From Diplonema japonicum (taxonomy: Eukaryota; Protista; Euglenozoa: Diplonemea), in the NCBI GenBank assembly GCA_964019335.1, contig OZ025682.1:1-64000 (forward strand): a DNA stretch of 64,000 bases, written 5' to 3'. The notes beneath the pieces were generated by a model, which was not told where the DNA came from, made no database searches, and worked only from the letters and a program-made list of their open reading frames with translations. A program made the position numbers and the translations under genes. This document shows, piece by piece, positions 1-55,000 of the stretch. Numbering within the stretch: the first letter of the stretch is position 1; the number at the start of each line of letters is the position of its first letter.

Positions 1-588
1 GGGTTTGCGGGTTTGCGGGTTTGCGGGTTTGCGGGTTTGCGGGTTTGCGGGTTTGCGGGTTTGCGGGTTTGCGGGTTTGCGGGTTTGCGGGTTTGCGGGT
101 TTGCGGGTTTGCGGGTTTGCGGGTTTGCGGGTTTGCGGGTTTGCGGGTTTGCGGGTTTGCGGGTTTGCGGGTTTGCGGGTTTGCGGGTTTGCGGGTTTGC
201 GGGTTTGCGGGTTTGCGGGTTTGCGGGTTTGCGGGTTTGCGGGTTTGCGGGTTTGCGGGTTTGCGGGTTTGCGGGTTTGCGGGTTTGCGGGTTTGCGGGT
301 TTGCGGGTTTGCGGGTTTGCGGGTTTGCGGGTTTGCGGGTTTGCGGGTTTGCGGGTTTGCGGGTTTGCGGGTTTGCGGGTTTGCGGGTTTGCGGGTTTGC
401 GGGTTTGCGGGTTTGCGGGTTTGCGGGTTTGCGGGTTTGCGGGTTTGCGGGTTTGCGGGTTTGCGGGTTTGCGGGTTTGCGGGTTTGCGGGTTTGCGGGT
501 TTGCGGGTTTGCGGGTTTGCGGGTTTGCGGGTTTGCGGGTTTGCGGGTTTGCGGGTTTGCGGGTTTGCGGGTTTGCGGGTTTGCGGGG
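1..588 (+). repeat. Perfect tandem array (GGGTTTGC)73 + GGGG; telomere-like octamer satellite, open at window start
   Basis: Units start at 1, 9, ... 577 and no variant units were seen. GGG runs every 8 nt give G-quadruplex potential on the + strand. Confidence 0.98.
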
Positions 589-3500
589 TATGGGCCCCAC
601 CCGTGCCCTCCCCGACTCGAGCTGCAGCCAAGCCACCGCACTGTTCACCGGGGCCCAGTTCTCCTTGTTGCGCACCTTGACCGTGTCCCGCACCAGGTCG
701 TCGCTCCCCAGCTCTTCCATCAACCTGTGCTCCGCCAAGAACTTGAACTGGGGCCCGGTCATCCCCTTGAGCTCACCCCTGCATATGTTGGCTTCGACCA
801 CGGTGCCATCCGCCCCCGTACCCTTCAGATAGATGTAGCCACCCTCCACACAATCCGAGTCAGTACTGGCCGATCGGGCCCGGGCCCGCTTCTTGTCCTT
901 CTTGCTCCACTTCAGCTCTTCCAGGGTGGGGAGGTCCGTGGCAACCACCTCAGGCCGCCTCTCCCTGTCTTCCTCCTTCTTCCGGGCCAACAGCCCAAGG
1001 TACCTCTCAAAGGAGACGTCCTCGAACAACCCCGGGACCGTCACCACCGCTGACTGCAGGTCGACCTCTTCAACACCCATCTTCCGCAGATGGTCCTGGA
1101 CAGTGCGCCTCGTCTCCTTCTCGCAGGGCCCCCTCCCCTCGTAGACGTCGAGGGTGACCTTCCTTCCATCCCTCACCCACGCCTTCACTTTGATCAGGTC
1201 CTTGACCTTTCCCACTGGGGCCCTTATCCTTGCGTCGCACCTCTCCAAGAACTCACGTAGTGTCACCTTGGTAGCGCCGGCTCCCGCCGCAATGCCCACT
1301 ACCCCTTCCTTCCCCGGTGTCGGGTGGTGTCTGCACCCCCGGGTCTGCAACTTGACCACCCTCCATGCCGTTTCCAGAGTCCCCTTGAGCACGCCACCCT
1401 TGAAACGAACAGGTTGCACCGCCGAACACCCACACGCGTACGTGATCTGGAAATCCTGGACCGTCCTCGGGAACTCGAACTCGCGGTATGTTTCCGACTT
1501 CTGCACCTCACAACCCACAATGCGGCTGCGGCGCTCTCCGTCCGACCCACCTTCCAAGCTTGCGAAGTACTGCTTTACCATCATGTATCCAAGTCCAGCG
1601 ATACCAATCTGGCCAGCCATAGCCACCTCCAGTGGAACACCCAGCGACTCGGCCTTCGCAAGAAGCATCTCCTCAGTCCTCTCCCTTCCAGGGTCCGTTC
1701 CTTCTTCAAGGATGATCTCCACCCGGCCCTCGAACTGGATGATGAACTTGAGCAGTCGGTCCCCCGGCCTCGCCCTCAGTGGCACCATCGCTCTCGGAAT
1801 TGGGATGCCCATCACCACATCAATCGGGTCAAGCTGAACGAAGTCTCCCCCTACTTCCACCTGCTGTTCCCTTTCCGGTGCCCCGACTCCCATCAGCTGA
1901 TCTCCCTCCGGCGTCTGGATCCCACCCCTAGGTGTGTCAGGCCCCGACTGGCTGCCTCCGCTCGGTGCGTTCCCGCCCTCTTTGGTCCCTTCGGGGGCGT
2001 CATCCGCCTGCGGCTTCAGAGTCCTCCCACCGCCCTGTCTCTTCGCAGCTTGTTCCCTACAGAATTCGCTCACGGTCATCTTCCTCGTAGCCGTTGTCGC
2101 ACTCTGGTCCCCCTTGTTCGAGTCCCTCTGGGCCTCCGTGAGACACTGGTCCAAGGTCTGGTTCACCGCAGCGTCAGTCGCCCCTTGTCTCTTCCCATCT
2201 TCCTGGGCCTTCGGGGAAAGCCCCCCTCCCTGCCCAGCCCTCTCGCTGGATCCTGTTCCGGCCATCTCCGTGTCTTCTCCTCCCGGCGAGGCTGCTTCGA
2301 GTCCTGCTCCCGCTTTCCCTTGTGTTCCACCCTCCACCGGTTCCGCCTTTCGCTGCTGCTGCATTCGGGCGTCCAGGTCCTTCTTCGTCTGCTCCAGAAG
2401 GGCATCCAGCTGGTGGGCCACCGTGATTGGGGGTCCGCCTCCCTGTCCCTTCACTTCCCTCTCGGACGACTCCTCAGCTTCGGTGGTTTTTTCATTGCCG
2501 AAGGAGTCCTCTGTGAGGTCAGTGTTGGATTCAGTGTTGGGTTCGTTGTTCGCTTCCTCGTTGTCCTTTTTTTCCTCTTCGCCGTCCGGTACCGGGGGCC
2601 CTGGATCCAACTGTACAGGCCCTTTGACTAACAGCGCCCCTGCTATCGATCTCATCATGGCCGTTGACACCTCTTGGACCACACGCCTGTGTATCGAGAC
2701 TCTGTCCCCGTGAGCCTGCGCAGCTATGCTCTTGGACAGTTTCTTCGTGAGGTAGACTGCTGCCTCCCCGAACCCCCCAAAGGTCTCCATCGCGAAAGGT
2801 ACAAAGGCCACGCGTGTCTTGGCGAGCTTTGCCTCATACTTCTGGCGCTTGTAGTGTTCCGCCTTCGCCGCTGCGTACCCCGCAGTCTTCGCCGCCTGGT
2901 TGACACAAGACTCGTTCCTCGGGTGCACGATGACCACGTCCATAGCCATTGGGCGGGAACCCCCCACCCCACCTGGGAAGACACGTCCGCCGGGCGCTGG
3001 GACGACCCCGGGATCAGCCCCGTCTTCTCCATCGTTGCGCTCACCCCGGCCCACTGACAGTGTCTGTGGATGGTCTCCTTCACCCGGTCGTGCCTCGCAA
3101 TCCTGGCGTTGCCGCATCCCTGGGCATGGTCACCCCATACGTCCATCCCCTCAGTCTTGCACCTCGGGTCGTGGCAGCTCTCACCCTGCTTGTAGACCGG
3201 AGCCCCCAACCACCACTTGATCAGAGCCCCAAACTCGTTGTCCGACAGCTGGTTGTAGAAGTCAGGCGTCGCCGTCAACCACGCCCCCGCATAGTGCATT
3301 GACTCCGACATCAACCTCGCTCTCGAGCGTGCATCTGCTTTCGCCAAGAGGTCCTCCAGCGCCTTCTCATCAAGCACCCTAGAGAGCCACCTCTGGCTGC
3401 AGATGTGGGGGGCCTTGGCCACCATGTCGGTGTAATCTGCATGCCGCCTTTCGTCCTGTTGAACCACTTGAGCCAGCTCCCCCATACACCCCCTTCCAGC

Positions 3501-3726
3501 CCATGTTCGTATTTGGGATCCAGCTCCTTGCACAGCTTCATCGTCGACGCCCTCGAAGCCATGTTGGCCACACGCAGGTGCTCCTGGCAGCTCCTCATCC
3601 CAAGCCCACCGACTTTTACAGACAGTTTCGCCTGCTGCCATTCTTTCGACCCGTTCTCGAACTGCATGCCACACACCTTCGACATCGTCTTCCACACCAT
3701 CTCATCGAACCTGTGCATGACCCCTC
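589..3726 (-). mobile_element. 5'-truncated, frameshifted non-LTR retrotransposon of RLE type (CRE/SLACS-like clade) with long C-terminal extension
   Basis: Manual minus-strand translation shows the RT thumb end (QAKLSVKVGGLG), AGAWL, a CCHC knuckle (CHDPRC...GDHAQGC), RHD, and an RLE core (RPADV../DVVIVHP../KRQKY../FVPFAMETFGGFGEA). Frameshifts lie near 3430 and 2980. The frame then stays open from ~2980 into the repeat. Confidence 0.85.
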
Positions 3727-4924
3727 CCTAGTAATGGTCTATCTGTTGGTTTTCTTTCCTTTATAACTTACCTTTCTCATTCTTTGTATTTACCCCCCCC
3801 CCCCCTGTTTTTACTGTACTTTATTGGCAGGTTGTTTTAAAAAAATAACCTAACCCAACAAGACACCCCAATAGCACCAGCAAATCTGTCAGAAAAGACT
3901 ACCTGATAGCCTACCTTGGGTGGAATGGGGGCATGGCTGGCAATATTGGGGTTGAAAGGTCCCAGGATTGAGGTGAAGAAGGTGCCACCACTGACACTGT
4001 TATTGTTGGCAAGGCACTGGAGGTGAAGGAGATTGCAGCCAAGAGGAAAGACCAACTGCTATTGCTGGGCAAGGAACCAAAAGAATGAAATAAATTCCAC
4101 AAAAAAAACCAAGTAAGGGTAAAAGGTTTGAATACATAGGTTAAATGGGCTGTGGTTAAAACTTTCCATTGGCTGTTCAGAATTCCATTTTTGGGACAAA
4201 ATTGGGTGTTCAAAAAAAAATTATTTTTTGCCCTCAGTGTTGTCATGAGGATGAGTTGCCCCCCTGAGATTTTCGGATTTTTACTTACTTTTTACTTCAG
4301 AATATAGTTTAGAGATGTGTATTCCACCTAAACACCTTTCTGAACTTTTTGGTTTGCAGAAATGGGTTTTTAAGGTGTTTTTAATATAAATTTCATGATT
4401 TCTGGCTTTTTCCAGAAAAAAATTTTTGGGGTTAAAAATGGCCAAAGTGACCCCAAGTTTGGGGTCCCCTGGGAAAAAAAAATTTTTTTTGGCCAAAAAT
4501 TTCCAAAAAAGTCTGTTTTGAGGGTGCTAAATGTGTGAGGGTCCCTAGAAAAAAAAAATTTTTTTTGCCCCCCCACCCCCCCACCCCCCTGCCACCCTAA
4601 AACCGAAAATACAGGTCTGAGGGGTCTACTGGTCTGGCCCCCTTTTCCTTCGTCAGGCGTCTTGCCACACACCACAGGTACCCTTAAATGTCTTTCTTTT
4701 TTTTTTCTTCTTCTTCATACCACAGACATGCACAGCTCCATCAAGCCATTTGACACATTTGCACCTATCTACTCTGGTTCACTGCAGCTGCAGGTATGTA
4801 TATATGTCCTGAAATGTTGAATTTGGATGTAATAGAAAAGGGTGGAAATAATAAATAATATGTACAAGAGGAGGGTGTGTGTGTTTACACAACCTGTGTA
4901 AACAGATTGGTTCCTTAATTGTAT

Positions 4925-6784
4925 TTAAAAAAAGAAGGGGGAAGCAATATATTTTACAGGTGTTTTGAACAACTGTGTAAAACAGTGCTCAGATATCAAC
5001 CTGTGTAAACAGATCAGTCTGTTTAATGTTGGGCTGCAACCTATTGCTAGGTACTCATCAATCTGCATCCCCAGCTGCTGCCAATCTGCCATCATTTTTT
5101 GCAATTCAGCAAACGGGATGAGGTGATCCAGCAGTGTGTTTTGCAGTGTGACCAAGTCTGAAAGTTCTCCAGTTGATACTTTGGGATTCAGAAAAGTATA
5201 CAACCTGATACCAAGAAACGACATGTTTCGTTCAGCCCTTGCTTTGTAAACCTTGATGACTTCAGAGACTGTGGTAGCATTGAGTGACCCCTCCACCTGG
5301 GATTCAAGGAATTTCTTCAAGCTCTTTCCAACAACGAAAATTTCATATGCCACCATAGCTATGCCAGATGTGTCCCCTTGCACACAATCTGTTGCAACTG
5401 TGAAGGGTGTGGAAATCTGTATTGCGAATTCCAGCTCTGCCCCAAAACCTTCCTCTATGCCTGGAAAGAATTCTAGGAGATCAAGGATGGACTTCATCAT
5501 TTTGAAAAACGAATTCCATCTGGTCTTTGTGTACCTCTTGATCTGTCTCGTCTTTTCACAGCATACTCCATGTGAGACCTGTATGGTGTGGAGTGCCAAC
5601 TGCCCAGCTTTTGAGGTCCATCTCTTGATCAGCGTTTTCACTTTGGCTCTAATGTTAGCCAGTCGCTCAATCTTGAAGATGTCACCAAGGGCAAGTTGCA
5701 TGGAATGTGCAACACAACGATATGCTAGGACACCTTTGCAACTCAGCATTGTAGTTGTATTGTTCAAAAGCTGGTCCATTCCAGCAGAGAGCTCAGTGTT
5801 GTCAGAGTTGGTGTCGGTTTCAGAGTTGGAGTCAAGGTCAGTGACACCTGAAGCATCACTACTGCTAATATTGCTGCTAACATCCTCAATGTCATCAAAT
5901 AAAAAGTTGAGTTCCACTTCGATGTCTTGATGTATCTTTGCAAGCACTGCTTGCATCACACTAGCATTATCAGCACATACTGAAAATACATGTACAACAT
6001 GGCTCCGAAGTTCCAGTATCATTTCACGGATGTGGGACAAAATGACAGCAGCAGTGGCACTCACTTTTGTAAGGTCTATCATCTTGCAAAAGTAGCTGTT
6101 CTTCCCATCTGACATACTAATGCCAAGGATGCTTTGATGGTTTATTGTGGCCCTATCAACAAGGAGGTACACATTCTGCCCTTGGAGCCTGTTTAGGACA
6201 GCAGCATATGTCTCCTGTCCAAGTTCAACAACACGGCTTTGCATATGTTTCCTGTTGATTCCTTTCAATTTGCCTGCATTGAAAAAGCTGTGAAAGAACT
6301 TTCAATCACAATACAGGCAAAGGAAAATGGACACACGATCCACCATACTCAGGGCTTGCTTCTCTTGGACAACACATCTCTTTGCTGTGAGATTTGAGCC
6401 TTGAGAATGAGGTGAACCCTGTGACAGCAACAACCCTGGCATTGGCTCAGAGATCAGACTGCACTTTTCTTTTGCTGGCTTGGGGATCTTTTGCAGCTGT
6501 CTTCTTCTTCAGCTTTTCTGCCAATTTCGCTTTTGCACCAGGGCTGTGTCTGCACTCCCAGTGCTCCTTCAGCTTCCCCGATCTTGACTGGATGGTCACT
6601 GCACGTTCAACACACTCAGGGGCCGCTTCTCTATGACTGTGCCATCCTTTTCCTTTGTCACTATCTTGCCAAAGTAGTACTCCTTAGAAGGGTCGATACC
6701 ATGTGCATCACCAACAGACCATGTCTTGTCCCAGATGGATGTCTTGGGTGTTGTAGAACATTCCTTGGCAGGTGCTTCCAACAT
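4925..6784 (-). pseudogene. hAT-superfamily transposase pseudogene
   Basis: ORF 4925..6268 has YLLVDRAT (first D), VCADNASVM (second D), RCVAHSMQL (CxxH) and TRWNS. A broken BED-finger-like piece lies upstream (..LKEHWECRH.., 6450-6780). No C-terminal ERxFS/dimerisation motif is present. Confidence 0.8.
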
Positions 6785-6789
6785 GACCT

Positions 6790-6903
6790 GTCAGTCCCAT
6801 CCCATCCCCTAAAACGGAATACAGGCCTGGACAGGACTCACAGGACTCCATGGGATGGGACTCGATGGGACTCACAGGACTCACAGGACTTTCCCCAACA
6901 CTG
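6790..6903 (-). mobile_element. hAT element 5' terminus with subterminal GAGTCC repeats
   Basis: Reverse complement reads CAGTGTTGGGGAAAGTCCTGTGAGTCCTGTGAGTCCCATCGAGTCC..., about 120 bp upstream of the transposase 5' fragment. A related (gagtccc[c/t]t)n block lies at 8295-8423. Confidence 0.65.
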
Positions 6904-7337
6904 TCATTATTTTTGATAGTTTTGGAACTTTTTTTTTTTTTCTTTTTTTCCCTTTGAGAAAAAAAAAAAAAAAAAAAGGGGAAAAAAATCCTTGATTTTT
7001 TTTGACATACATGATGTGTTTACCTTTTTTTTTTTTTCCTTCTTTTTTTCTTGTCTTCTCACATTTTTTCACACACCTAAGCCAAACTGTTGTTTCTGCT
7101 TTCCACATTAAATGTTGAATTTGGATGTAATAGAAAAGGGGAAATAATAAATAATATGTACAAGAGGAGGGTGTGTATGTTTATACAACCTGTGTAAACA
7201 GATCGGTTCCTTGCTTTCAGTGCTGTGCCCCTAATGTGTGTGATGTACAGCTCAACCCCTGCATTGCACTGCCTGTTTGTTGCACATATTTCATGTTGTC
7301 TCCCCCCCCCCACCTGAAAATAATATATAGGAGATAA

Positions 7338-7680
7338 ATATATGAGTTAAAGGAGGCTGGTGTTGGCAGCACCCTGCACAAGAACTGTCTACTTGATTAC
7401 AGGGGGGTGCACCACAGCCAAGTTGTAGCTTCTTCTGCGTTCTGCATCATTTCCTTAATCACAATGGCCGGATGGCCAGGTTGTAGCTTCTTCTGCATTC
7501 TGTGTCGTGTCCTTAATGTGTGTGGTGTTCAGCTCAACCCCAGCCAGGGCACCCCAGGTAACCAAGATTCTGCACTTGTGTTGTTTGCTCAGTGATGACA
7601 GATGAGGAGGTCAACAGCAAATGCATCTGATGTTTTTCTTATATTTTCATGTTATCCCCACCACCTGAAAAAGAAGATAA

Positions 7681-7685
<5 letters not shown>
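7338..7685 (-). repeat. Dispersed repeat family copy (inverted relative to 9047-9385)
   Basis: Reverse complement matches 9047-9385 (ttggttaccc..gttgagctgaacacc..cattaaggacacgac..gaagaagctacaac..ccctgtaatcaagtag..tttaactcatata). Confidence 0.85.
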
Positions 7686-7712
<27 letters not shown>

Positions 7713-35878: not shown

Positions 35879-38800
35879 ATGAAGACTGGGATGAAGGGGA
35901 CCGAGGTGCTCCTGGCGGTGTGCGGGGTCGGATGGCTCCTTGTGGGGCAAGGGGCGGAGGCGGTGACGGCGACGCAGACGATCTCGCTGACGCAGCCCAC
36001 GGTGTCGACGTCGCTGACGGACTCGGTGACGGTGACGGAGCCGACGGGGACGGACTCCCTCTCGATGACGCAATCGATGACCGTCCCGACGGGGACGGAC
36101 TCGGTGACGATGTCGGTGCCGACGGGGACGGGGACGTTCTCGGTTTCCGAGTCGGAGACGCACTCTGATTCTGTGTCGGTGTCCCTCTTCACGGGGTCGC
36201 AGACCATGTCCCTCTTCACGGGCTCGGAGAGTGCGACCATATCACTCCCGACCGGGTCGCAAACCGTGTCCCTCTTCACGGGGACCGAAACCTCCACGTT
36301 CAGTCTTCCCACCGGAACCGCGTCGTCAACCATCTCTCTCCCGACGGGGACGGTTTCTGCAACGGGCTCGTCGACGTACACGGTGGGGACCGGGTCTGGG
36401 TCGACCACGCTCACCGGAACGAAGAGTATTTTCACCGGGACCGTGTCCTACTCACTGAACACCGGGACAGCCTCCACCACGATGACGGTGCCGACGGGGA
36501 CCGCCTCCGCATCTGTCACGATGTCCCTCCCCACAAGGACCTCAACCATCTCGCTCCCAACCGGGACCTCGACGACGACGATGACGCTCCCCACCGGGAC
36601 GAGCACAGCTTCCGCAACAATCTCGCTTCCGACGGGGACCCAGTCCATGTCGCACACGATCTCGAAGTCCCTGTCGGCGACCTTCTCGCTCCCCGCGCTG
36701 AACAACTACACGATGAACGTGGAGCCGTCGTCATTCGTGGAGGGACAGGAGATCAGGGTGCAGCTGAAGACGATCCTGGACGGGTTGGTGACGAACTCGT
36801 CGACGAACCGCCTTCAACACGACAAGAAACTCTTCAACGTGACGGACCTGGGATCCCTGCAGGTGCGGATGTACACGTGGTCGTCCACCTACGCCTCGAA
36901 CTGCGAACTGTACAAGGGGACAACGCCGCTGGCGGAGAGGAACGAGTTTGGGATGACGCAGAGCGCGCGCTACGAGGGGCTCGTGTACGTGCAGTCTGCG
37001 CACGTGACCTTCCCGGCCCCGTCCTCCGCGATGAAGTTCGTGATCTGCTTCAAGCACAGGCTCCCGCAGTACGACTTCCACATCCCGAGCATCCCCGACC
37101 AGATGAACAACGTGTGGCAGGTCTTCTCCACCGCGGACGGAGAGTACGTGTTCCAAGCTGCGGAGTCCCTTGCCTGGTACCGCCTCTCTGACCCGACGGT
37201 GGGGCAGTACGCGATCATCCAGCTCTTGAGTCAGGAACCCGGGTGGAACTTCACCTACGCCCCGTCGGGGTGCCTCAGCGACACGGCGAAGTGCGGCTGG
37301 GGGGACAACCTGAAGATCGTGCCAAAGGGGATGCCGTGCACCTACGAGTACCAGTCCTTCGACCACGCGTACCTCGGGTCCTTGTTCGTGGGGACCGACG
37401 GGAGCTGGATCGGGGGCGGGCTGGACGCGCTGAAGGAGGGGGCGACGGCTGGGGGCGTCGGAGCCTTCGGAACCCAGTTCGCAAACCCGCTCGTGGACAC
37501 CTGGACCTCGTGGGGGACATACTTCCCGGCGAACGACGAGAACTACCAGGGGACGAGCGTGGTGACGGCACCGAGCGGCGGGGAGACCTCGCACGCGTAC
37601 GCCTACGTGAGGCTCCCGCAAACGGTGGGGAGCTACGACATCTGCTTCTCCTCGCGCCAGCAGAGGATCTCGTGGAAGGGAGAGAACACCACGATAGACA
37701 GCGTCCCGATGTGGAGGAAGCTGTTCAGGTGCACGAGCGCAGCGGCGTGTGCGGCGAACGACGCGAGCACGCACTTCTCGACGGTGGCGGAGGAGGTGGG
37801 GTGGTCCATGTTCGACCTCACGGCGAACACCTGGGGGGAGATCGTGTTCGACGACAGCGGGAAGGGGCAGCTCAGCAACAAGGCGGCAACGAGCACGGTG
37901 ATCGTGAGCTCACCGATGGCAACGGCAGACTACCCGCAGGTGCAGACCTCGACGGCGAACTACTGGGCCCCTTCCGGGGGAGACTACTTCCGCATCGTTC
38001 CCTCGTCGCAGTTCACGGAGACGACAACGACGCCGAGGGTGCACCCCTTCACAAGCGGGGTGCGCCTCGGCTCCTTTCCATCGGTCGGCTGCTGGTCACG
38101 CGCCTATGACGTGGCGACCTCCAGCGCCTCCTCTTCGAGCCGTGGCGGGCAAGGGGGCTTCGTAGACGACGGGGCAATGTATCCGATCGGGTCGAGGGAC
38201 CTGACGGGAGACCCGACGCTGGCGTCGCCGACCAGTGACGCGGGAGGTCAAGCCGCGACCTACGCGACTCTGTACGTTCCTGGGGAGCTGGAGACCTGGT
38301 ATGTGTGCTACCGCAGGACGTGCACCTTCAGCGGGGCGACCTGTGCACAGAACAGCGGTATGAGGGTGCTCCCCTTCCACTACACGGGGACCGGATCGAG
38401 CCCCACGAAGTGGCGTCACCTCGAAGGGAACTACCCGTACACGCACCTCCTCGCCCCCGGTCGCTACAACGAGACACTGGTGGTGTCGGCGGCGGCGGCG
38501 GCGGAGGGGGCCGCTGCCGTCGTTGGGGACAACGGGTACCCTCCCCTCGCGACCTGGTACATGAACGATACGAGGACAGGGACGTGGGGTCCGCTCGTCG
38601 TGGAGAGGGTGAGCTCCACGCAGAACAAGGCGATGCTGGACTCGAGGGCGTGGGACTTCGTGAGGGTGTGGAACCCCGAAGACACGGTTTCAAAGACTGT
38701 GGGGAGCACGCTGAGGCTGGTGCCGTACAACAGACCGTGTGACTACCCCGGGTTCACCGGGGCCTGGTACCAGGGGGCGAAGAACGAGGACGGCGGTATG

Positions 38801-52078: not shown

Positions 52079-55000
52079 ACAAAATTCTGAAGAGAACCCT
52101 TGCCTGCAAAGGTAGGATTTCGGTGAAGGAAGAACTGCGAAAGCAAGCTTCAAGGATGAAGACTGGGATGAAGGGGACCGAGGTGCTCCTGGCGGTGTGC
52201 GGGGTCGGATGGCTCCTTGTGGGGCAAGGGGCGGAGGCGGTGACGGCGACGCAGACGATCTCGCTGACGCAGCCCACGGTGTCGACGTCGCTGACGGACT
52301 CGGTGACGGTGACGGAGCCGACGGGGACGGACTCCCTCTCGATGACGCAATCGATGACCGTCCCGACGGGGACGGACTCGGTGACGATGTCGGTGCCGAC
52401 GGGGACGGGGACGTTCTCGGTTTCCGAGTCGGAGACGCACTCTGATTCTGTGTCGGTGTCCCTCTTCACGGGGTCGCAGACCATGTCCCTCTTCACGGGC
52501 TCGGAGAGTGCGACCATATCACTCCCGACCGGGTCGCAAACCGTGTCCCTCTTCACGGGGACCGAAACCTCCACGTTCAGTCTTCCCACCGGAACCGCGT
52601 CGTCAACCATCTCTCTCCCGACGGGGACGGTTTCTGCAACGGGCTCGTCGACGTACACGGTGGGGACCGGGTCTGGGTCGACCACGCTCACCGGAACGAA
52701 GAGTATTTTCACCGGGACCGTGTCCTACTCACTGAACACCGGGACAGCCTCCACCACGATGACGGTGCCGACGGGGACCGCCTCCGCATCTGTCACGATG
52801 TCCCTCCCCACAAGGACCTCAACCATCTCGCTCCCAACCGGGACCTCGACGACGACGATGACGCTCCCCACCGGGACGAGCACAGCTTCCGCAACAATCT
52901 CGCTTCCGACGGGGACCCAGTCCATGTCGCACACGATCTCGAAGTCCCTGTCGGCGACCTTCTCGCTCCCCGCGCTGAACAACTACACGATGAACGTGGA
53001 GCCGTCGTCATTCGTGGAGGGACAGGAGATCAGGGTGCAGCTGAAGACGATCCTGGACGGGTTGGTGACGAACTCGTCGACGAACCGCCTTCAACACGAC
53101 AAGAAACTCTTCAACGTGACGGACCTGGGATCCCTGCAGGTGCGGATGTACACGTGGTCGTCCACCTACGCCTCGAACTGCGAACTGTACAAGGGGACAA
53201 CGCCGCTGGCGGAGAGGAACGAGTTTGGGATGACGCAGAGCGCGCGCTACGAGGGGCTCGTGTACGTGCAGTCTGCGCACGTGACCTTCCCGGCCCCGTC
53301 CTCCGCGATGAAGTTCGTGATCTGCTTCAAGCACAGGCTCCCGCAGTACGACTTCCACATCCCGAGCATCCCCGACCAGATGAACAACGTGTGGCAGGTC
53401 TTCTCCACCGCGGACGGAGAGTACGTGTTCCAAGCTGCGGAGTCCCTTGCCTGGTACCGCCTCTCTGACCCGACGGTGGGGCAGTACGCGATCATCCAGC
53501 TCTTGAGTCAGGAACCCGGGTGGAACTTCACCTACGCCCCGTCGGGGTGCCTCAGCGACACGGCGAAGTGCGGCTGGGGGGACAACCTGAAGATCGTGCC
53601 AAAGGGGATGCCGTGCACCTACGAGTACCAGTCCTTCGACCACGCGTACCTCGGGTCCTTGTTCGTGGGGACCGACGGGAGCTGGATCGGGGGCGGGCTG
53701 GACGCGCTGAAGGAGGGGGCGACGGCTGGGGGCGTCGGAGCCTTCGGAACCCAGTTCGCAAACCCGCTCGTGGACACCTGGACCTCGTGGGGGACATACT
53801 TCCCGGCGAACGACGAGAACTACCAGGGGACGAGCGTGGTGACGGCACCGAGCGGCGGGGAGACCTCGCACGCGTACGCCTACGTGAGGCTCCCGCAAAC
53901 GGTGGGGAGCTACGACATCTGCTTCTCCTCGCGCCAGCAGAGGATCTCGTGGAAGGGAGAGAACACCACGATAGACAGCGTCCCGATGTGGAGGAAGCTG
54001 TTCAGGTGCACGAGCGCAGCGGCGTGTGCGGCGAACGACGCGAGCACGCACTTCTCGACGGTGGCGGAGGAGGTGGGGTGGTCCATGTTCGACCTCACGG
54101 CGAACACCTGGGGGGAGATCGTGTTCGACGACAGCGGGAAGGGGCAGCTCAGCAACAAGGCGGCAACGAGCACGGTGATCGTGAGCTCACCGATGGCAAC
54201 GGCAGACTACCCGCAGGTGCAGACCTCGACGGCGAACTACTGGGCCCCTTCCGGGGGAGACTACTTCCGCATCGTTCCCTCGTCGCAGTTCACGGAGACG
54301 ACAACGACGCCGAGGGTGCACCCCTTCACAAGCGGGGTGCGCCTCGGCTCCTTTCCATCGGTCGGCTGCTGGTCACGCGCCTATGACGTGGCGACCTCCA
54401 GCGCCTCCTCTTCGAGCCGTGGCGGGCAAGGGGGCTTCGTAGACGACGGGGCAATGTATCCGATCGGGTCGAGGGACCTGACGGGAGACCCGACGCTGGC
54501 GTCGCCGACCAGTGACGCGGGAGGTCAAGCCGCGACCTACGCGACTCTGTACGTTCCTGGGGAGCTGGAGACCTGGTATGTGTGCTACCGCAGGACGTGC
54601 ACCTTCAGCGGGGCGACCTGTGCACAGAACAGCGGTATGAGGGTGCTCCCCTTCCACTACACGGGGACCGGATCGAGCCCCACGAAGTGGCGTCACCTCG
54701 AAGGGAACTACCCGTACACGCACCTCCTCGCCCCCGGTCGCTACAACGAGACACTGGTGGTGTCGGCGGCGGCGGCGGCGGAGGGGGCCGCTGCCGTCGT
54801 TGGGGACAACGGGTACCCTCCCCTCGCGACCTGGTACATGAACGATACGAGGACAGGGACGTGGGGTCCGCTCGTCGTGGAGAGGGTGAGCTCCACGCAG
54901 AACAAGGCGATGCTGGACTCGAGGGCGTGGGACTTCGTGAGGGTGTGGAACCCCGAAGACACGGTTTCAAAGACTGTGGGGAGCACGCTGAGGCTGGTGC

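Follow-up and report, generated by a model that had tools for sequence, protein, structure and literature searches.

We analysed the first 64,000 nucleotides of contig OZ025682.1 from the diplonemid Diplonema japonicum (assembly GCA_964019335.1; forward strand, hereafter the window), which open with an array of perfect octamers abutting the remains of a retrotransposon that lacks long terminal repeats (non-LTR). Our results indicate that this array (window 1-587) is probably the genuine left telomere of chromosome 35, with a polarity that is reversed relative to known telomeres, and that it was added de novo onto a broken copy of the element.

A perfect octamer array at the left end of chromosome 35

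Scaffold C35, a sequence of 590,175 bp that represents chromosome 35, begins at window base 1; a preliminary description of the window, made from the letters alone, had asked whether position 1 is a contig end, and it is. The available text of the D. japonicum YPF1604 genome note gives 0.59 Mb for chromosome 35 and 1.19 Mb for chromosome 1 in its Table 2 (PMC13598402). From position 1 to 587 the plus strand reads (GGGTTTGC)73.4 with a period of 8, 100% matches and 0 indels, both by Tandem Repeats Finder and by direct reading, in agreement with the roughly 73 perfect octamers described earlier for positions 1-600. The strand with its 3' end at the scaffold end is (GCAAACCC)n.

C35 shows the mirror image at its right end. 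There the plus strand carries 18 copies of GCAAAACCC followed by (GCAAACCC)n, and its last bases are exactly GCAAACCC. Within this right telomere (about 5840-6175 of C35:584001-590175) the 18 proximal variants are nine-base units and a few shortened units lie close to the tip, the order of proximal variants and distal canonical units being that of ordinary telomeres.

Polarity and phase of arrays at chromosome ends

The assembly under study comprises 62.5 Mb in 132 records, and the genome note, in the text available, describes 62.30 Mb in 118 chromosomes assembled with hifiasm from 102x PacBio HiFi data, followed by Hi-C scaffolding and manual curation (PMC13598402). We tabulated motif and strand in the outermost 64 bases of 80 of the 264 scaffold ends, namely both ends of 40 scaffolds (the odd-numbered C1-C41 without C35, plus every fourth from C43 to C119). 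The G-rich strand ran 5' to 3' inward at 43 of these ends and in the opposite direction at one, and the other 36 showed no array. Arrays were present at both ends in 10 of the 40 sampled scaffolds, and in C35 besides. At assembly level the repeat is thus terminal, at both ends of C35 and at 44 of the 80 sampled ends, and nearly all array-bearing sampled ends share one orientation (43/44; binomial p = 5e-12). This orientation is the inverted one proposed in the preliminary description, and the other end of C35 agrees with it: where a telomere would be expected to have its G-rich strand running 5' to 3' toward the terminus, that strand is directed inward at 43 of the 44 ends. Longer array loci, found together with the element matches described below, ranged in length from 3 to 73 units and followed the G-inward rule without exception. 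No (TTAGGG)4 occurred anywhere in the assembly.

These observations bear directly on whether the array could be an ordinary satellite or an interstitial telomere-like tract with no end function, the last of three models offered in the preliminary description. Short arrays of the octamer do exist inside unrelated metagenome contigs; a metagenome scan with four octamer units returned 22 loci with arrays of 3-13 units. These loci were mostly internal and of mixed orientation, with GC contents from 28% to 66%, and they say nothing about diplonemid telomeres. One 567-kb metagenome contig had three octamer-array sites. The D. japonicum arrays do not show the internal location and indifferent orientation of a satellite. 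Given their terminal position and uniform polarity, the lack of a competing end repeat and the healed junctions described below, we reject this model as scarcely conceivable.

The arrays also share a terminal phase. Base 1 fell exactly in the GGGTTTGC phase at 25 of 43 array-bearing ends, compared with an expectation of 1/8 (p = 2e-12). Such a preference suggests either a defined natural 5' terminal nucleotide, as is present on the C-strand of human telomeres, or an assembly habit. The shared phase points to natural molecular ends rather than to reads broken at random within a longer array, and the single polarity argues against assembly breaks in an internal array, which would be expected to give both polarities equally.

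It could still be proposed that the scaffold ends are not physical termini and that a distal part (an inverted array, a fold-back or heavily modified DNA) is systematically missing, such that the true 3' strand would be conventional. The evidence is at assembly level only, and both the 36 array-less ends and the right end of scaffold C103, which has a tiny palindrome and 3.4 units in the conventional direction, would suit this proposal. We nevertheless consider it very improbable. One polarity at 43 of 44 array ends and one exact phase at 25 of 43 fit poorly with a missing part, the arrays differ in length (3 to 73 units), and the terminus, judging from the erosion and healing junctions described below, lies on the 3' side of the element. 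The 102x HiFi coverage reported in the available text of the genome note likewise speaks against it (PMC13598402).

The unusual end on C103 (C103:315892-316491, last 50 bases) consists of the palindrome AAACCCG-TGTGT-CGGGTTT and, after it, 3.4 GGGTTTGC units. We considered whether this end might be a hairpin or fold-back and set the idea aside, the palindrome arms being only 7 bases long. Several of the array-less ends begin in A- or T-rich low-complexity sequence resembling the 3' untranslated region (3'UTR) of the element, and at these ends it looks as if the assembly stopped short.

A truncated retrotransposon abuts the array

Next to the array lies a dead fragment of a telomere-targeting non-LTR retrotransposon on the minus strand (588..3728), truncated on its 5' side at about codon 1897 of 2959 and on its 3' side 12 codons before the family stop codon. 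Window positions 581-3728 align with a copy of full length, located at the right end of scaffold C16, with 98.9% identity over 3159 columns, 23 mismatches and 4 gap openings. The window fragment begins after the reverse transcriptase (RT) and lacks the first ~1,900 codons, and compared with the intact copy it has two frameshifts, near 2943-2999 and 3419-3436, in the linker and endonuclease region. What had been called an open retroelement open reading frame (ORF) is accordingly open only over its last 787 codons (589..2949, minus strand), which encode the end of the endonuclease domain and an uncharacterised C-terminal extension.

This frame reads straight into the array. From the ATG at 2949 the minus strand runs without a stop through GTG GGG CCC ATA CCC C/GC AAA CCC, where the slash marks the junction, and continues as (RKPANPQT)n, and the open frame, free of stops, measures 1043 aa. 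No stop codon, 3'UTR or poly(A) stands between the element and the array, just as the preliminary description had read it. A remnant of an R2-type (restriction-like) endonuclease, assigned by eye, is located at 2830..3176 on the minus strand, with the motifs CHDPRC..GDHAQGC..RHD..E..RPAD, then a frameshift, then DVVIV..K..KY.

The full-length copy on C16 shows what the window fragment has lost. It is a single open frame of 2959 codons in a family whose members measure ~10 kb, and its Pfam domains are 2OG-FeII_Oxy_2 (residues 321-454), OTU (1097-1202) and RVT_1 (1602-1805, 60.1 bits). The best PDB matches of the RT region are R2 proteins (9nl2, E = 8e-8, compared with 0.013 for L1 ORF2p), which identifies the RT of the intact copy as R2-type. 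Downstream of it we recognised, by eye and with no match to a profile or structure (Pfam was silent), C-x4-C...H-x3-C, RHD, E, RPAD, DVVIV and K..KY, which we take to be the finer motifs of the endonuclease. A CCHC motif and a PD-(D/E)XK nuclease make up the layout of the R2 group as given in the available text of a previous study (PMC3636483).

The region beyond the endonuclease resembles nothing found in our searches. Pfam recognised no family in three window ORFs, a word-index search among proteins 0.55-1.75x the query length returned no homologue of the 787-aa frame, and the ESM Atlas gave no usable match for this frame or its C-terminal extension. AlphaFold, given the single sequence of the last 458 residues, returned a model with a pLDDT (predicted local distance difference test) of 34. 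The ~700 residues that follow the endonuclease (window 589-2800, minus strand) are 98-99% conserved among copies and have no Pfam, Atlas or sequence match.

The family is located at chromosome tips with its 3' end outward. Searching the genome with the 787-aa frame gave 59 matches. Of these, 32 are on the minus strand no more than 10 kb from a left end and 23 on the plus strand; the remaining 4 lie elsewhere (C115:68,886, C53:497,592, C81:401,882 and C7:204,586). All 12 plus-strand matches on scaffolds of known length are within 11 kb of the right end, and the other 11 were placed by size-order interpolation. Insertion is thus site-specific and of fixed orientation, the 3' ends pointing at the nearest scaffold end in 55 of 59 matches, and the sense strand runs into the C/A-rich repeat strand. 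The C16 copy itself has about two GCAAACCC units before it and an array after it.

Element 5' ends carry a 38-base sequence that appears to resemble the diplonemid spliced leader. This sequence occurs 159 times in the genome, often near scaffold ends, and stands twice in tandem on a chained copy at the right end of chromosome 35 (3741-3838 of C35:584001-590175). On C24 four copies of it are spaced ~10.6 kb apart (7177, 17836, 28495 and 39078), suggesting a head-to-tail chain of full-length elements.

Native, truncated and capped junctions

The junction in the window (585..588, minus strand) differs from the way in which intact copies meet the array. Element and repeat have CCC at 585-587 in common, and the C at 588 is the last base found only in the element; the match of ACCC(C) to the repeat unit noted in the preliminary description therefore holds for the three shared bases and not for base 588. 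The 30-mer across the junction occurs once in the genome. We searched 29 other loci with the 20 bases just upstream of the junction and found this probe in 25, all of which continue from CATACCCC into ACAAGAAGAGG (also given as CATACCCC into ACAAGAAG), reach the stop codon 12 codons later and then have the 3'UTR and poly(A). Among the four loci with no exact probe match, two are truncated earlier and two extend past the window cut point. Because all 25 other copies keep stop codon, 3'UTR and poly(A), their absence in the window represents a deletion and not a feature of the element. The comparison of junctions across copies recommended in the preliminary description thus shows the window copy to be 3'-truncated, with a junction of its own.

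Native 3' ends of the family read CTCAAGTCCCCCTTTTT and then have a run of A's, from 4 to more than 45 in number, before the array. The array follows the poly(A) directly at C84-L, C9-L and C71-R, after 1-4 odd bases at C105-L and C40-L, and after 12-17 extra bases at C37-R, C105-R and C19-L. Seven further copies resemble the one in the window in being cut, at differing points, and capped by the array directly and without filler; the cut in the C75-L copy is deep in the ORF, at C16:771,225 (~codon 1220). The overlap of these truncated copies with the repeat is GC at C84-R, CC at C79-R, and a single A at C75-L, C118-L and the inner copy of C66-L, with none at C54-R and C76-R. Together with CCC in the window, the eight capped copies thus have overlaps of 3, 2, 2, 1, 1, 1, 0 and 0 nt. 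Overlap of at least 1 nt in 6 of 8 has p = 0.004 at a chance rate of 0.25 and p = 0.025 at 0.35, from a small sample (n = 8). Two ends carry chains of copies. C66-L has a truncated copy, three repeat units, a second truncated copy and the terminal array, and the right end of C35 has, in order, a truncated copy, a pair of the spliced-leader-like sequences and a further copy, which breaks off in its 5' third, where the array caps it.

These junctions also modify the second earlier model, in which the array is the target of a sequence-specific element. The family exists, and intact copies sit within the array in one orientation. The window junction is not a native 3' insertion junction, and the accompanying view of the array as interstitial or a fusion relic does not stand.

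A related possibility is that the telomere was already there and that the element inserted in 3'-truncated form, its RT being primed by a nicked G-strand end (...GCGGG-3') and starting inside the RNA at CCCC. In its favour, the family clearly inserts into the octamer array by target priming, the CCC overlap fits primer annealing equally well, and the phases of native junctions are likewise variable. We regard this possibility as unlikely on several grounds. R2-type enzymes require 3'UTR RNA to start. Native junctions have poly(A), with extra bases in 5 of 8, compared with eight truncated junctions that are clean; the cut points range at least from ~codon 1220 (the C16:771,225 position above) into the 3'UTR; and the window copy has no telomere units on its 5' side. 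Moreover, the copies whose ends could be seen adjoin arrays at or near scaffold ends, as erosion predicts.

A divergent TERT candidate

The preliminary description had also proposed a search for TERT, and this turned up a divergent candidate at C41:532474-535800, a frame of 1086 codons in which Telomerase_RBD (PF12009) scores 28.4 bits against a cut-off of 25. A full HMMER search with this candidate yielded three strong homologues, two of which exceed the Telomerase_RBD cut-off, and a weak match (E = 3.7e-4) over the same region to a clear TERT with an RBD score of 99.7 bits. A profile built from the candidate and two homologues matched 9 PDB chains, all of them telomerase reverse transcriptase. 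Sequence comparison therefore supports the presence of a divergent TERT gene in the genome. Near its N-terminus the candidate has cysteines and histidines clustered in a CCCH-like manner (zf-CCCH_3, with an E of 0.044 only), and one of the homologues (1800 aa) has cyclin domains at its end, probably from a merged gene model.

The TERT gene is relevant to the proposal that another chromosome end was the source of the array, which would have been copied without telomerase, through break-induced or microhomology-mediated replication resembling alternative lengthening of telomeres (ALT). The outcome of such copying would look identical to what we observe, and some yeasts are described, in the available text of a previous report, as having repeat telomeres without telomerase (PMC13234504). 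We think this quite improbable, because 0-3 nt is little overlap for recombination, the window array is perfect where many donor arrays contain variant units, and the genome has a TERT gene.

A model for the origin of the array

Of the three earlier models, the first, a true end with a non-canonical repeat healed onto a broken element, is the one that our results support. The array lies at the scaffold start, 43 of 44 array-bearing ends have the same polarity, (TTAGGG)4 is absent, the element lacks 3' sequence that 25 of 25 other copies with the probe retain, and its junction is unique. Nor did we find what would have spoken against a true end: no unique sequence continues to the left, no TTAGGG was seen at other ends, and other element copies do abut the repeat.

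We propose that a ~10-kb element inserted into the telomere repeat with its 3' end facing the tip. Since no telomere units adjoin the 5' break of the window copy, we infer this original insertion from the rest of the family. The tip may then have been lost by erosion or breakage up to a point 12 codons before the element stop codon, and the sense strand, its 3' end (...CATACCCC) now exposed, would have been extended with new GCAAACCC units aligned on the terminal CCC. Repeat addition would sometimes be followed by a new insertion. The outcome would be a homogeneous 73-unit array together with an accidental ORF read-through. The likeliest enzyme would be the cell's telomerase. Because the sense strand of the element ends 3' at the tip, the added strand would have been synthesised 5' to 3' as GCAAACCC, and synthesis of GCAAACCC from RNA would need a template containing GGGUUUGC; the terminal single strand in vivo would then be C/A-rich.

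It is about an even chance, in our estimation, that D. japonicum has a telomerase with such a G-rich template (GGGUUUGC) that extends a C/A-rich 3' strand, and that it would be the first eukaryote found to do so. We give the same balanced weight to the corollary that the window and at least 7 other ends record the direction of synthesis, from seeds of 0-3 nt on arbitrary broken sequence.

Several observations weigh against our preferred reading of the array as a healed telomere. Its terminal status depends on one curated assembly, in which the outermost 64 bases are without an array at 36 of the 80 sampled ends and the right end of C103 has 3.4 GGGTTTGC units in the conventional direction. The 5' break of the window element adjoins other repeats, with no telomere units between. 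Internal priming, or microhomology-mediated copying of a different telomere, could also produce junctions with microhomology. Single-run arrays were found at 5 of 7 healed ends compared with 2 of 8 native ends, a difference that is not significant (p = 0.13), and as this comparison gave only a trend, we set aside the perfection of the array as proof of recent synthesis. As for the enzyme, a 918-aa piece of the TERT candidate falls just under the Pfam cut-offs (RBD 24.2 compared with 25, RVT_1 24.5 compared with 29.6), and the candidate had no single-sequence PDB match and no homologue by word-index search.

Other features of the window

The subtelomeric flank next to the element fragment (3729..7700) is made of other dispersed repeats and has no telomere units at the 5' break. 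It is a mosaic of dispersed repeat families, with 263 matches of 74-97% identity on many scaffolds. Farther into the window, identical 78- and 39-base tandem repeats are present at 35982-36144 and 52259-52421, 16.3 kb apart. They sit inside two blocks of 62-67% GC (36-50 kb and 52-64 kb in the GC profile), and the pair points to a large tandem duplication of a GC-rich coding region.

Implications

To our knowledge, the 3' strand is G/T-rich in all telomeres described until now. Overhang-binding proteins (POT1, Cdc13 and TEBP), G-quadruplex and t-loop models, and the rules for telomerase templates all assume such a strand. If the 3' ends of D. japonicum chromosomes are indeed C/A-rich, the G/T rule would not be a chemical necessity, and different end-binding proteins as well as a G-rich telomerase template would be predicted. 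With its 3' end pointing outward, the retrotransposon leaves healed stumps that provide a natural record, within the genome, of the strand that was extended. The combination in one element of AlkB-like and OTU domains with an RT, an endonuclease and a 700-aa tail is also unusual for a LINE.

We found no description of reversed telomere polarity in the literature searched, and a full-text literature search with six permutations of the GGGTTTGC octamer as whole words returned no paper. In the diplonemid and euglenozoan literature examined, the word 'telomere' appeared only in connection with trypanosome H3V or in transposon names, and the main text of the D. japonicum genome note, as far as available, contains no word starting with 'telomer' (PMC13598402).

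Comparison with known systems

The closest parallel to the D. japonicum ends is found in Magnaporthe oryzae, where truncated MoTeR elements are recapped by de novo telomere addition and, according to the available text of the report, 19 of 24 such events started from seeds of 1-4 nt (PMC7367193). In M. oryzae, as described there (PMC7367193), and by our reading in D. japonicum, a telomere-embedded CRE-related element is degraded from the tip and recapped on 0-4 nt of homology; chains of elements with short repeat tracts in between occur in both. The likeness to MoTeR drawn in the preliminary description is correct in that the sense strand runs into the C-rich repeat strand, but the arrangement is reversed relative to the chromosome end. 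MoTeR 5' ends are nearest the chromosome end and healing gives 5'-truncated copies, whereas in the D. japonicum family it is the 3' end that faces the tip, and the parts lost on healing are the stop codon, 3'UTR and poly(A). The repeat of M. oryzae, moreover, is TTAGGG in conventional polarity, again as given in the text available to us (PMC7367193). The 3' ends of the D. japonicum family lie at the tip, unlike those of MoTeR, because the array itself is reversed.

The element shares several features with the R2 group and the CRE clade (CRE, SLACS, MoTeR and FoTeR) as these are described in the available texts, including a single large ORF, an RT closest to R2 proteins, a specific repeat as target and a fixed orientation (PMC3636483, PMC7367193). 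Downstream of the RT it has motifs that, read by eye, resemble a CCHC and a PD..D..K-type endonuclease. It differs from them in having a 2-oxoglutarate (2OG) oxygenase (AlkB-like) and an OTU domain upstream of the RT, a ~700-aa extension after the endonuclease, a poly(A) tail and a spliced-leader-like 5' sequence.

Retrotransposons confined to chromosome ends in a fixed orientation are also represented by SART1/TRAS1 of Bombyx and HeT-A/TART of Drosophila, which use an APE endonuclease or end-priming. HeT-A and TART replace telomerase repeats in Drosophila and have their 5' ends outward.

Finally, canonical telomerase telomeres, such as the TTAGGG repeats of kinetoplastids and the T4G4 repeats of spirotrich ciliates, share several features with the D. 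japonicum ends: a short tandem repeat in one orientation, proximal variants, a terminal phase that is preferred over others, the presence of TERT in the genome and the healing of breaks. They differ in the nature of the strand that ends 3' at the tip, which is G/T-rich in canonical telomeres and C/A-rich in D. japonicum. We regard the D. japonicum array as a variant of the telomere rather than an ordinary member of the class, for it has the location and the uniform orientation of a telomere, but its G-rich strand does not run toward the end.

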